The position numbers and the translations under genes were made by a program. The notes under the pieces were generated by a model that was not told where the DNA came from, ran no database searches, and was given only the letters and a program-made list of their open reading frames with translations. From the NCBI GenBank assembly GCA_037447605.1, contig CM074805.1, positions 3,939,361 to 4,003,360 of the forward strand: 64,000 nucleotides of DNA, read 5' to 3'. Shown in pieces: positions 37,701-41,188 of the stretch (position 1 is the first letter of the stretch; each line of letters opens with the position of its first letter). This DNA comes from Zygnema circumcarinatum SAG 698-1b. Taxonomy: Eukaryota > Plantae > Zygnematophyceae.

Positions 37701-38445
37701 CTTCTGCCTATCACACAGGTGGTTGCTCCACCGCCCGGCCCGCCCTCCTTCACCCATTTGCTGAGCCCGAGCACTTGCAAAACTGTGCGCACAGATATCA
37801 CAGGCTCTCCTGCAGCGAAGGGTTCCCTTATATGTACAAACAAACTCTGCAGAGTATTCAGCCGCTAGTGAAGCTACAGCAGGACTGTAACGAGCTACTC
37901 TTGCAGGACCCACTACAACTACAAGTACAGTACAGCTTGGGAGTTTCAATAATCAGCGCAAGTGGCAGCACATCACATAGCGGCAACAAAGGGCACCTAG
38001 CTAACAAAAAGGGCCTTACCCGTCGGAACAGGGTAGAGCCCTCTCCGCGGTTATGCATGAGACCCCTTGACGGCCTCATGGCGCCAACGTCGCAGGTTGG
38101 TACAACAAGCCAGGCCCGCTGGCATGACAGGTAAATACCGCCATGTAAAACTGTCAGAAACTTGGTCAACCCCTGACTAATCAGCCAACTACAACTGAAC
38201 CTTTCCAGCCACAGCATACATCAACCCAAACTGCCACTGCTGAAATAAGCAGAGTAGACAGCTAGCTGATGGCTCACCATGGGCCAAGGTCCTGAAGGGA
38301 CAAGCCAGCAATCACGTCCGAATGGCAGCTTTCCCGAAGCTGCGTAGCAACACATGCCGAGGCATTTTTGCTGAGTTATTCACAACAAATGAACAATGGT
38401 CGTTCACACCTGCAGCAACCACTGCCTGCACTTGCAGTCAGGGTA

Positions 38446-40283
38446 TCATCCCGAGAAGAAGGCACATGCAGACTGGTTGGAGCCTGCAAAAACTGCCAGG
38501 TTTTCACGATCAAACATCGTTGCAAGGGACAAGTAAAGGAGATGGTGCACAGGAAGCCTCGTCCTCAGGGCTCCAATCCCCCTCCAAATCAGCGTGTTCA
38601 TTATAAATTTCTCCAGCTCTCCGCTTGAACTCCTTCAACTCCTGCTCCACGAGAAACAGTCTCTGCATTCCATAGCATCGAAAAAAAACAGTCAGTCAAC
38701 CGATGCGAAACCCGTACTTAAAAAACTAGTAGAGCATGATGCAATTCAGGCTGACAGGCAAAAGAATTCGATGCAAGCAAACGCAAGTGGTGCCATTTCT
38801 TATAACCTTTAGGATCAAACCAGTTTTTGCTGTCTCGGCTTAACGAGCAGCCATCTCACAGCTTAATGAAGAATAACACAGAATTACAAAGATGCAATAG
38901 CCATCTCTTTGGAAATCACCTTGAGTATATCACAGCAAGCAAGAAAGTCAAGCAACAAGAGAAACATTCGCACGATTAACAAGGATAATCAAACTTCACC
39001 TCTTGGAGAGTCATGTTCTCTTCTTGAAGGTGGGCGATCTCAGTCTCCTGTTCTTCGACTCTTGCCTGTAAAAACCTGTTGCCATTCCTTCCTTCACAGT
39101 CAGCTCCACCTGGACTGTAAAGCATGTCAAACCTTTGCCACCCATCATCCTTTCTGTCCTCTTCTTGTTGCTCATGTTTGACAATCGGCTGATTATCGAC
39201 CTGATGCACCTGCTCCACACTGTCACTGCTTGTTGTTCCATCAGCAGATTCGGCACTGGTCTCCTTATCCACTGCCACATCACTACCCCCTGATGATTCC
39301 AAATCTGGACTGCACCGGAGTCTGATGCAACCATTCATTGATCCATAGGGGTCAACATGTAACTCCTTTGCCTCCTCCACCAACTGATCACCAGCTGTTC
39401 CAGACGCCCATGGACTGGGAGAAACGGCTAGAGCTGGCAGGGTAGGAGAGACAGCTGGCGCCATAATACCTAGCTTGTTAGCTCGCATAATAAATGATGT
39501 TGTATTTCGGGGAGCTTCAGGCACCGACGTCAGGTCTGAGGAACGCTTGAATCTCTTGTTACGGTGAAAGTACTTCTTCGTGTTTTTTTGGTTTTGGCGG
39601 CTCAGGTCATGAAGCCTTGGGGGCCTGAACTCCATATTCTTCCTGTGACCAGGCCCGGGAAGTATAGCACCTTCTGTCGGATCGGCATCCACCATTTTGC
39701 GCTTCTGGTGCGTGTAGTTATACGAGTTGTTATACGTATTGTTGTATCTCTTCCGTTTCGCGATAGGGCCGCGCTGCCCTGGCTGCTGAGTTGAGACATT
39801 CGATCTGTATCCAGGGTCGTCCGAGAGTAGACCATCTGGCGGAAAGCCTGCACCCTTAGCCCGAGGAGGTTGGCCTCTCCAGGGCTGCTTCCGAGGGAAC
39901 TCTCTTGAGGCCCGTGGAAAACTCGTCACTGCCTTTCTCGCCGCAGCACTTTCTTCCAGTGTCCGGTGCATCTGGAGAGGACCAACCGTCGGCAGCATCC
40001 CTCGCTCATAGCGGGCCATAGGAGGCTTCATATCCAATATGTCGTGATAATAAGGTTGCCTCCCTGATGGATGGAAACCAGACACATCACTTAAACCTGC
40101 AAAAACGGTCACAGAGAGTTTCAGCTATGAAGAATTGACAGAAGCAACTCGCATGATCAAAACGATAACTCAAATAACAAAATCAAACAACGCCTACAAG
40201 ACAGCGAAGCAACATGCCCAAAATCACAAATAATCTTTACCTGGCGGATGATCACATGGTTGCATCATCATAGTGGCTATCAT
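38446..40283 (-). CDS. PRLI-interacting-factor-A-like protein (basic region, APRNTTSFIM motif, acidic region, C-terminal coiled coil); exons about 40283-40232, 40096-39000, 38662-38446
   Basis: PEAPRNTTSFIMRANK, VDPYGSMNGCIRLR, QRFDMLY and IAHLQEENMTLQE|RLFLVEQEL match the recalled motif order of this plant family. Confidence 0.8.
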
Positions 40284-41188
40284 TCCTCCGCCGAAAAAGG
40301 TGGGTTGTGTCTCAAGAAGTTGCTGCAGCACACGTAAAACACGAACATGGAGTCAGCCCCGCTTGGCGAACATCTTAGTCTGTAAAAAACTGCGGGTGAG
40401 AAGCAAAATTCACGACGAAAGGATGAAGGTAGAAGAAAGACATCTCAGCCATCTCATCTCATCTCATCTCATCTTCAAGTATCTGGAAGTACTAAAACAT
40501 ACGAAGGTGAAGTATGAAAGAGACAGTCAGCATCCGAGCCTCGAACGTATTGTACCTCCCTTGCAATCCATGACATACAGAAAAGCAGCCAGCCTAGGAC
40601 CCTCGGACGATACACGTCAAGCAGTTCACTATGCATCATGAAAAAAAACGTTGTCTTCTTTACCGAAGGGACCAGTCAGACTATGAACACACCGCACACC
40701 GCATGCACAAAAAAAACCGATAGCCAACACAATCCACAAAAAAAAAATTACATGCAAAAATACAAACGAAGGAGGCAGCACAATACAACATCTCACCTAC
40801 CTAAAGTCCCCTCTTCTCCGAGTCTCATTCATCAGAAGCAGAAAAAAACTAAACAAACAGAGCATATCCTTACCTTATCTCAAATTTCTCGTCTCAAGAA
40901 CCAGACGCTTTCGGGAAACCTAATCCCTGAAAGCCAGAAACTCTGCAGTTTTCGAACGCCCGTCCAACTGTAGACGCCCGCTTACAAATATGCAAACAAC
41001 CTCTTCAATATCAAGAACGTGCTGCACAAGTTATTGAAAATATTTAAGCAAACGTCTCTCTTCCCGGAATCCCTTCCCTTTCCCCTCCAGGTCAGCGCGA
41101 GCTTGCCTGCTCAACCAAGGTCTGCCTGGCTGTTTTCAGGGCCTGCCCTCCGTCATAGTGGAGCCACTAACGCCCCTCGGCGAACGAC

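Follow-up and report, generated by a model that had tools for sequence, protein, structure and literature searches.

The 64,000-nt stretch of DNA analysed here (the window) holds a minus-strand gene of an alga whose product, judged by homology, belongs to the 'PRLI-interacting factor A' family, which spans the streptophytes and is represented in Arabidopsis by AT5G19900. Profile comparisons indicated that its local similarity to HEXIM, the 7SK-dependent inhibitor of P-TEFb (CDK9-cyclin T), is real and statistically supported and is centred on a PYNT-type motif. As the match covers 25 columns and no specific similarity was found elsewhere, the resemblance as read from sequence is one of short motif and architecture, and may stem either from common descent or from convergence. 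A HEXIM-like mechanism for this 'PRLI-interacting factor A' protein is the likeliest explanation of these observations, though we put it somewhat short of an even chance, and a plant HEXIM-like regulator is at this stage a good lead, short of demonstration.

The gene, its transcript and its plant family

The gene has three coding exons and a product of 430 aa. Translation starts at an ATG at 40283-40281 (minus strand, as are all features below), with an in-frame stop 48 nt upstream within the spliced mRNA, and ends at a TGA at 38512-38510. A 5'UTR exon (40874..41000, running on past 41000) is separated by an intron (40323-40873) from the exon at 40241..40322, which contains the remaining 5'UTR and coding exon 1 (coding 40283-40241; 14 codons plus 1 nt), and RNA contigs of four runs join 40874 to 40322. 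Coding exon 2 (39000..40096, aa 15-380) carries all conserved motifs and is followed by the coding part of exon 3 (38510..38662), comprising aa 381-430 (38662-38513) and the TGA. Both coding introns have GT..AG borders, and both joints (40096/40241 and 39000/38662) were seen in spliced RNA contigs of four runs. The first part of the 3'UTR (38278..38509) is followed by an intron (38119-38277; joint 38118/38278, four runs), after which the UTR resumes below 38118. These contigs came from runs X1, X2, X4 and X5, which belong to three studies of the same organism, and the gene is expressed. The initial annotation had placed the lower limit of the gene at 38446, which was wrong: that position lies 64 nt past the stop codon and marks where an ORF of a different frame ends.

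A first search recovered 30 streptophyte homologs, with P0001 as the best match (E=5.4e-91), and a second, word-indexed search with the family alignment added one protein only. An exhaustive profile search yielded 262 clusters at 50% identity with E<=0.001, the best 150 of which were inspected, down to E=4e-16; scores with the family profile reached 380 bits. Members were found in Arabidopsis, Brassica, Kalanchoe, Cuscuta, Sphagnum, Marchantia (two paralog types), ferns, Chara, Closterium and Mesotaenium. The family name is carried by the Arabidopsis protein P0211 (AED92763.1), which we take to be the product of locus AT5G19900. The locus also appears in a paper under the name 'PRLI-interacting factor A'.

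Homology between the algal protein and AT5G19900 with its orthologs is full-length, although the algal N-terminal region is longer and identity to land-plant members is 30-45%. The blocks in common are PPxLxxL-basic, APRNTTSF, an [ST]P cluster, YGSMxGLIRLR, RFEMxY and LEEENLTLKERL, and across the family APRNTTSF, YGSMxG.IRLR, RFEMxY and LEEENLTLKERL are invariant or nearly so. The description of the product as an uncharacterised plant protein held up, since the family is known by name only and literature searches found no functional study of AT5G19900 or 'PRLI-interacting factor A'. Interaction data linking the family to CDKC or CYCT were likewise not found in the accessible literature, in searches that extended to CDKC/CYCT interactomes and to HEXIM in Arabidopsis or other plants.

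Protein layout and the PYNT-type motif

Direct reading of the sequence recovered every element that had been listed for this protein, from the basic tract to the coiled coil, in the order claimed. The AlphaFold2 model has a mean pLDDT of 55.7 and shows disorder over most of its length; the protein is predicted to be largely disordered. At aa 128-148 (39696..39758) lies a bipartite basic cluster, KRKR...KRK, which looks NLS-like, and the protein is probably nuclear. It is followed by the basic tract KKYFHRNKRFKR (aa 188-199, 39543-39578), which overlaps a predicted alpha-helix (aa 176-196, 39552..39614; exon-2 residues 161-181 in the AlphaFold2 model, block pLDDT up to 90). The motif APRNTTSFIM (aa 209-218), the counterpart of the HEXIM PYNT-type motif, lies exactly where the initial annotation had put it, at 39486..39515, and forms the core of both the Pfam HEXIM match and the hhalign alignment described below. 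Next come a plant-specific [ST]P-rich stretch (aa 227-244, 39408..39461) and the plant-specific invariant motif VDPYGSMNGCIRLR (aa 262-275, 39315..39356), which keeps V, Y, G, S, M and G without exception throughout alignment A1.

An acidic, Ser-rich region predicted to be disordered (aa 277-333, 39141..39311) combines 16 D+E against 4 K+R with low pLDDT, and ends at WQRFDMLY (aa 334-341, 39117..39140), an F-x3-Y element ahead of the coil whose R and F are nearly invariant among homologs. The first part of the coiled coil (aa 354-380, 39000..39080) is an AlphaFold2 helix with pLDDT 92-98 (exon-2 residues 338-364), and the second part (aa 381-400, 38603..38662) continues the conserved block LEEENLTLKERLxLxEQExxELRRR across the splice junction. 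The coiled-coil sequence IAHLQEENMTLQE|RLFLVEQEL thus straddles the RNA-confirmed exon 2/3 junction. The protein probably dimerises through this C-terminal coil.

Within APRNTTSFIM, the residues A, P, N, T, T, S and F were invariant in 31 homologs, and the HEXIM inhibitory-motif positions Pro, Asn, Thr, Thr, Phe, Leu/Ile and Met are all present. The human HEXIM1 motif is 202-PYNTTQFLM-210 (PMC12901311), which bears out the version of it that had been given in the initial annotation, and the F-x3-Y element and EN-containing coil given alongside it are both seen in a consensus built from 34 HEXIMs. In HEXIM1 the motif masks the CDK9 substrate site while the coiled coil binds cyclin T, the two acting synergistically, and the inactive mutant PNND alters the PYNT Tyr together with Thr205 (PMC6245832). 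The PYNT Tyr had been noted as Arg in the algal protein, and this is so at the Tyr203 position. Arg occupies that position in 85 of the 100 fetched family proteins with a canonical P-x-N-T-T, and Tyr or Phe at this place is confined to a handful of angiosperm paralogs and an RAP[FY]ND subfamily. Aromatic variants in the family include APYNTTSYIM and APYNTSSYLM, the subfamily pattern being RAP[FY]ND.SFLM.

Similarity to HEXIM and its competing explanations

Pfam HEXIM (PF15313) was the only family other than coiled coils to match the algal protein, at 17.7 bits (E=0.0044) against a gathering cutoff of 29 bits, with exon-2 residues 164-205 (aa 179-220) aligned to profile positions 7-49 of 142. 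The same profile matched 24 of 125 family members at E<=0.1 (best E=2.2e-5); none of the individually scanned members reached 29 bits, and for the Arabidopsis member the match was absent at E<=1. An independent HEXIM HMM gave 20 bits at most on plant proteins. Comparison of the plant alignment A2 with 34 Pfam-verified HEXIMs by hhalign gave a probability of 89%, P=2.3e-6 and a score of 51.8, with an alignment spanning only 25 columns around A-P-x-N-T-T-x-F-[LI]-[MI]. This score is more than 10 SD above the shuffle controls, of which column shuffles gave 13.0 +/- 2.6 (maximum 21.6) and block-reversed shuffles 16.1 +/- 3.2 (maximum 26.5). The HEXIM set consisted of genes found in metagenome contigs with a degenerate DNA pattern that fixes PYNTTQF[LFI]M, so that the motif columns of the HEXIM alignment could not vary, and the hhalign score may be too high for this reason. 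As a precaution, three vertebrate-like loci (L020, L025 and L033) were excluded from the alignments.

With the motif removed, hhalign left no specific similarity to HEXIM: the 50 columns upstream scored 6.0 (null 5.8 +/- 1.3), and the downstream, coil-containing part scored 26.4 versus 22.5-26.1 for reversed HEXIM columns. In the ESM Atlas, the nearest Pfam-annotated cluster by protein-language-model features was HEXIM for both the algal protein and AT5G19900, at 0.76 each, scores below 0.9 serving as leads only. PDB searches with the family profile, and with phmmer from a PYNT-bearing member, returned generic coiled coils only, with no HEXIM1 chain and no match of any kind to the PYNT-type region. 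The profile comparison that had been proposed as a check on HEXIM homology was significant in terms of P, but within 25 columns only and with Pfam scores below threshold. As for the proposed remote homology itself, the local similarity at the motif and the parallel order of elements stand, whereas the profile comparison gave no HEXIM-specific signal for the basic tract or the coil, and the Tyr is replaced by Arg.

These results could also be explained if the resemblance were a coincidental or convergent short linear motif and the family a disordered nuclear scaffold or adaptor for other partners, with the invariant YGSMNGxIRLR and A-P-x-N-T-T-S-F as docking sites for plant-specific proteins. 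We consider this less likely than not, slightly behind the HEXIM-like mechanism. The disappearance of HEXIM similarity outside about 25 columns, the sub-threshold Pfam matches of all individually scanned members and the lack of a HEXIM counterpart to YGSMNG all point this way, and the order of basic, acidic and coiled-coil regions, common in nuclear disordered proteins, counts for it too. So does the most comprehensive HEXIM survey we found, from which any green-plant sequence is absent. The family name records an interaction with PRL1 (presumably of two-hybrid origin), and for this reason PRL1, a WD40 protein in the spliceosome-associated MAC/NineTeen complex, is a candidate partner. On the other hand, the motif match lies far outside the shuffle controls and coincides with the segment that is best conserved in each family. 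The two families are also alike in protein size and in where the motif stands, with a helix ahead of it and an acidic region and a terminal coiled coil behind it. Both the all-family Pfam scan and the language-model features, neither of which depends on the proposal in the initial annotation, picked HEXIM.

The sequence directly after the motif suggests another role. A conserved block, LVSPxPxTPAxLPTPxxSP in the consensus of A2, gives the 45 aa that follow the motif a median of 4 [ST]P sites in the plant family versus 0 in HEXIMs, and this cluster may comprise sites for proline-directed kinases. It is conceivable, though improbable in our estimate, that the protein is chiefly a substrate or phosphorylation-regulated client of such kinases (CDKs or MAPKs) rather than an inhibitor, with PxNTT as docking site and the adjoining cluster as phospho-acceptor region. 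The conservation, plant specificity and position of the block argue for such a role, but disordered proteins often contain [ST]P clusters, and a substrate function would leave the coiled coil and the acidic region unexplained. It also overlaps with inhibition, because an inhibitor can itself be a substrate.

A reading of the C-terminal coil as CM1-like (centrosomin motif 1), with the family tethering or activating gamma-tubulin complexes, is highly improbable: although the best PDB match of the family profile was a CDK5RAP2 CM1 construct (8rx1, E=0.011; alignment of EtqiahLeEeNltLkerLflveqe with ENQITELKKENFNLKLRIYFLEER) and Pfam Cnn_1N (PF07989) matched 36 of 125 members (best 3.2e-5, profile positions 2-48), the same segment matches many unrelated coiled-coil families (Csm1_N, Shugoshin_N, bZIP, DivIC, GrpE, GAS) at similar sub-threshold scores, which argues for generic heptad similarity. 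Cnn_1N scores of individually scanned members were 19.2 bits at most (gathering threshold 28.5 bits). The Phe of CM1 ENFNLK is essential for gamma-tubulin complex binding, and the aligned position is Leu in the plant family consensus. CM1 is moreover usually located near the N-terminus of long coiled-coil proteins.

Under a HEXIM-like mechanism, a dimer would be anchored on a cyclin T-type partner by the coiled coil together with the F-x3-Y region ahead of it. The substrate site of CDKC, a CDK9-type kinase, would be filled by the invariant A-P-x-N-T-T-S-F-[IL]-[MI], which follows a short basic helix. Occupation of CDKC by the motif would hold back or modulate Ser2 phosphorylation of the Pol II CTD, and the basic and acidic regions might serve as a gate, possibly via RNA or phosphorylation of the adjacent [ST]P sites. 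We tentatively favour a role as a CDKC/CYCT regulator, with confidence below the halfway mark; binding or inhibition of CDKC/CYCT by the protein is conjectural. That streptophytes from algae to flowering plants share a dimeric coiled-coil module of HEXIM type, inserting P-x-N-T-T-x-F into CDKC, we consider somewhat unlikely. Such a module would amount to a step of P-TEFb sequestration or inhibition so far unrecognised in plants, perhaps gated by RNA or [ST]P phosphorylation, and would either have been inherited from before plants and animals diverged or have evolved convergently to fit the same surface of the kinase.

Significance and comparison with the animal system

The step that chiefly controls Pol II pause release in animals is the liberation of P-TEFb from HEXIM/7SK. 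In plants the kinase is present as CDKC;2 with CYCT1, and we know of no inhibitor for it. HEXIM itself is held to have arisen among animals and their nearest unicellular kin (Chivu et al., PMC11482795), although those authors also describe 'HEXIM-like' proteins from non-holozoans, among them the glaucophyte Cyanoptyche. If the family is HEXIM-like, AT5G19900 and the two Marchantia paralog types would give plant biologists concrete and easily testable candidates, and the regulatory principle would either have originated much deeper in eukaryote evolution or represent a striking convergence. If it is not HEXIM-like, there is still a streptophyte-wide, uncharacterised, putative nuclear protein with three invariant motifs that deserves a function.

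An Rfam scan of the whole window returned no RNA family and hence no 7SK; to our knowledge, plants have no 7SK-like RNA, and we know of no 7SK, LARP7-type partner or P-TEFb interaction for the plant family. No profile similarity to the bipartite arginine-rich RNA-binding motif of HEXIM, KHRR-PS-KKKR, was found in the plant basic tract, although the 45 aa upstream of the motif are basic in both, with a median of 10 K+R in plants and 14 in HEXIMs (13 in the algal protein). Between the motif and the acidic region, the plant proteins contain an insert of about 46 aa that is not in HEXIM and holds the [ST]P cluster and YGSMNGxIRLR; for the YGSMNG motif, the best-conserved plant motif after PxNTT, the hhalign alignment contained no HEXIM counterpart. 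Nor did hhalign pair the plant F-x3-Y element with that of HEXIM (Tyr271).

The coil of the plant family did not come out as specifically HEXIM-like in the profile comparison. It shares heptads with Asn with the C-terminal coil of HEXIM, and it also shows the pattern E-x-x-I-x-x-L-x-x-E-N-[FL]-x-L-K-x-R-[IL] of CM1 in CDK5RAP2 and centrosomin, from which it differs in its position within the protein and in the type of protein.

The order had been proposed to be that of HEXIM, and the elements are indeed collinear, including a predicted helix before the motif, but the similarity is significant at the motif only. HEXIM1 has its helix alphaL at aa 171-194, ahead of PYNT at 202 (PMC12901311); the gap from helix to motif is 14 residues in the AlphaFold2 model of the algal protein and 7 in a modelled HEXIM (helix 89-112, P119). 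Median size and motif position are about 300 aa and 115 in HEXIMs and about 320 aa and 111 in the plant family, compared with 430 aa and 210 in the algal protein. The largest net acidic charge in 40 aa downstream has a median of 9 in plants and 8 in HEXIMs, and the residues that follow F-x3-Y at the C-terminus number 90 and 124, respectively, at the median. The plant family and HEXIM run parallel in the order of helix (predicted in the algal protein), motif, acidic region, F-x3-Y and C-terminal coiled coil.

Gene structure and transcripts

The gene lies on the minus strand, with coding exons at 40283-40241, 40096-39000 and 38662-38513 and a stop codon at 38512-38510; both coding introns have GT..AG ends, and the product is 430 aa. 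The exact joints of this model recur in contigs from four public sequencing runs, drawn from three studies of the same organism, which indicates that these runs include RNA-derived sequence and that transcription and splicing follow the model. The initial annotation had placed the gene at 38446-40283, of which the upper limit is the ATG start, whereas the lower limit falls 64 nt past the stop codon. Reading the protein, we recovered all the elements it had named, in their order (basic tract, motif, Ser/Asp/Glu-rich region, WQRFDMLY and coiled coil), with the motif APRNTTSFIM at exactly 39515-39486.

After splicing, the ATG is preceded by an in-frame stop 48 nt upstream. The same run contigs revealed a 5'UTR intron (40323-40873, minus) and a spliced 3'UTR intron (38119-38277, minus), the latter lying 232 nt past the stop. 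An exon junction at that distance behind a stop codon is a classic trigger of nonsense-mediated decay, and the mRNA may therefore be regulated by this route. An RNA contig of run X1 continued about 2.1 kb further downstream of the 3'UTR intron (below 37800), and this extension contained no long ORF. One contig of run X4 carried an alternative joint inside exon 2 (39074-39467, minus) with GT..AG ends, skipping 394 nt; this length is not a multiple of 3, so the reading frame is shifted, and the skip takes out an [ST]P cluster, the YGSMNG motif, the acidic region and RFDMLY. The isoform is probably minor or unproductive.

A streptophyte protein family

A homolog search with the protein returned 30 proteins, all streptophyte (Mesotaenium, Chara, Closterium, Marchantia, Riccia, Selaginella, Diphasiastrum and ferns), the best being 56% identical. 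When 1.84 billion representatives were searched exhaustively with the family profile, 262 clusters reached E≤0.001, and 182 reached E≤1e-10; among the best 150 of the 262, every species-named cluster was streptophyte, and named members included Sphagnum and the angiosperms Kalanchoe, Cuscuta, Brassica, Syzygium and Helianthus. The Arabidopsis member (P0211, AED92763.1, 494 aa, chromosome 5) bears the source name "PRLI-interacting factor A", under which locus AT5G19900 appears in a paper; our literature search found no functional study under either designation. Precomputed Pfam annotation was absent for every family member among the matches listed.

Alignment of the homologs showed that A-P-x-N-T-T-S-F and V-x-x-Y-G-S-M-x-G are invariant and R-F-E-M-x-Y nearly so, and that the coiled-coil block Q-E-x-x-I-A-x-L-E-E-E-N-L-T-L-K-E-R-L is conserved. 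The HEXIM-like motif is followed, ahead of the acidic region, by two conserved plant-specific elements, the [ST]P cluster LVSPxPxTPAxLPTPxxSP (39408-39461, minus) and the invariant YGSMNGxIRLR (39315-39356, minus), and neither matched any Pfam family.

The replacement of the PYNT Tyr by Arg, as initially annotated, was borne out in the algal protein, and 85 of the 100 retrieved family members with a canonical P-x-N-T-T share it. APYNTTSYIM is found in two Kalanchoe paralogs and APYNTSSYLM in one lineage, while a paralogous subfamily with RAP[FY]N[DN].SFLMRVR (P0087, P0098-P0101, P0103, P0111, P0115, P0144 and P0153) carries an aromatic residue there; its sole species-named member is from Sphagnum, and it was not seen among the named angiosperm matches. 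Since Arg, Tyr and Phe all occur, this position is variable in plants. In the inactive HEXIM1 mutant PNND, Tyr203 and Thr205 were changed together (PMC6245832).

Similarity to HEXIM

Exon 2 gave a single Pfam match, to HEXIM (PF15313; E=0.0044), whose 17.7 bits fall below the cutoff of 29 bits; it pairs exon-2 residues 164-205 (aa 179-220) with profile positions 7-49 of 142. A HEXIM match at E≤0.1 was obtained for 24 of 125 family members (best 2.2e-5), all individually scanned members stayed under the Pfam threshold, and the Arabidopsis protein had no HEXIM match at E≤1. The coil region matched Csm1_N, Cnn_1N, Shugoshin_N, bZIP, GrpE and other unrelated coiled-coil families with similar scores, which we read as generic heptad similarity.

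Scanning metagenome and metatranscriptome contigs with a degenerate DNA pattern for PYNTTQF[LFI]M retrieved 88 HEXIM loci, which make a useful collection of natural HEXIM sequences; most ORFs ran uninterrupted from Met to stop. Once three vertebrate-like loci had been set aside as a precaution and kept out of the alignments, 73 of the 88 loci had complete ORFs with a length of 230 aa or more; judging from their sources, the samples appear to be mostly invertebrate-associated or marine. None of the contigs was judged to be human. The resulting HEXIM alignment (A3) holds 34 non-redundant ORFs, all of which pass Pfam HEXIM. The human HEXIM1 motif is 202-PYNTTQFLM-210 (PMC12901311).

Aligning the plant family profile with A3 in hhalign gave a probability of 89%, P=2.3e-6 and a score of 51.8 over 25 columns only, a score that may be inflated because the search pattern itself made the A3 motif columns invariant; the Pfam model is free of this bias. 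The alignment pairs "~P~APRNTTSFIiRAKksGG" with "GrpiAPYNTTQFLM~dH". The similarity is well above controls built by shuffling or reversing A3 columns: 150 column shuffles scored 13.0 ± 2.6 (maximum 21.6), 150 shuffles keeping reversed 10-column blocks 16.1 ± 3.2 (maximum 26.5), and full reversal 26.1. With the motif removed, the 50 upstream columns scored 6.0, the null level, and the downstream part 26.4 versus 22.5 for the reversed alignment, which appears to be the level of a generic coiled coil. An independent A3-derived HMM scored plant proteins no higher than 20 bits, in two collinear weak stretches at motif and coil. The proposed remote homology is partly supported, by local similarity at the motif; this similarity lies below the Pfam cutoff with none detectable elsewhere, and for these reasons we do not file the plant family as a HEXIM family member.

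In the ESM Atlas, the nearest Pfam-annotated cluster was HEXIM for both the algal protein (behind three streptophyte clusters) and AT5G19900 (first named cluster), at scores of 0.76, which the tool's calibration ranks as leads only. The HEXIM PYNT region is absent from all PDB chains, ruling out structure-based comparison.

Functional interpretation and comparison with HEXIM

Our best-supported working model, held tentatively and with every functional step inferred, is that the plant family works like HEXIM. The protein would form a dimer that offers its P-x-N-T-T-x-F segment to CDKC, a kinase of the CDK9 type, while its coil would dock on cyclin T. HEXIM1 uses the motif to mask the substrate site of CDK9; its coiled coil binds cyclin T and acts in synergy (PMC6245832). 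Common descent of the two families is doubtful. It is possible instead that the motif is coincidental or convergent and the protein a nuclear scaffold acting with PRL1 or other partners. That it is mainly a substrate of proline-directed kinases, a reading that overlaps with HEXIM-like action, seems unlikely. A CM1-like gamma-tubulin-complex binder is highly improbable: the coil (39000-39080 and 38603-38662) resembles CM1 of CDK5RAP2/centrosomin (PDB 8rx1, E=0.011; Pfam Cnn_1N, best E 3.2e-5 in the family), but several unrelated coiled-coil families resemble it equally well.

The supplementary files of a HEXIM survey include a glaucophyte entry and no Chloroplastida entry (Chivu et al., PMC11482795). 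No paper connecting plants or AT5G19900 with HEXIM emerged from full-text searches, and a review from 2025 on co-transcriptional regulation in plants leaves HEXIM unmentioned; as far as checked in the literature and Pfam annotation, the link is undescribed. An Rfam scan of the whole 64-kb window at gathering thresholds gave no match, hence no 7SK.

The plant family shares the single most conserved element of HEXIM; its position is the same in both, and so are its structural and charge surroundings. From the plant alignment, AlphaFold2 predicted a mostly disordered chain with a helix at exon-2 residues 161-181, 14 residues ahead of the motif, and a terminal helix, predicted with confidence, from residue 338; for a HEXIM it predicted a helix at 89-112, 7 residues ahead of PYNT, then disorder, then helices at 168-283. 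By NMR, helix alphaL (171-194) precedes PYNT in HEXIM1 (PMC12901311). Family medians for plant versus HEXIM were 111 versus 115 for motif position, 10 versus 14 for K+R in the 45 aa upstream, and 9 versus 8 for the largest net acidity in the 40 aa downstream. F-x3-Y lies at +106 versus +60 from the motif, and 90 versus 124 residues from the C-terminus. The 46-residue difference in offset corresponds to a plant-specific insert, which holds the [ST]P cluster (median 4 sites versus 0 in HEXIM) and the invariant YGSMNGxIRLR.
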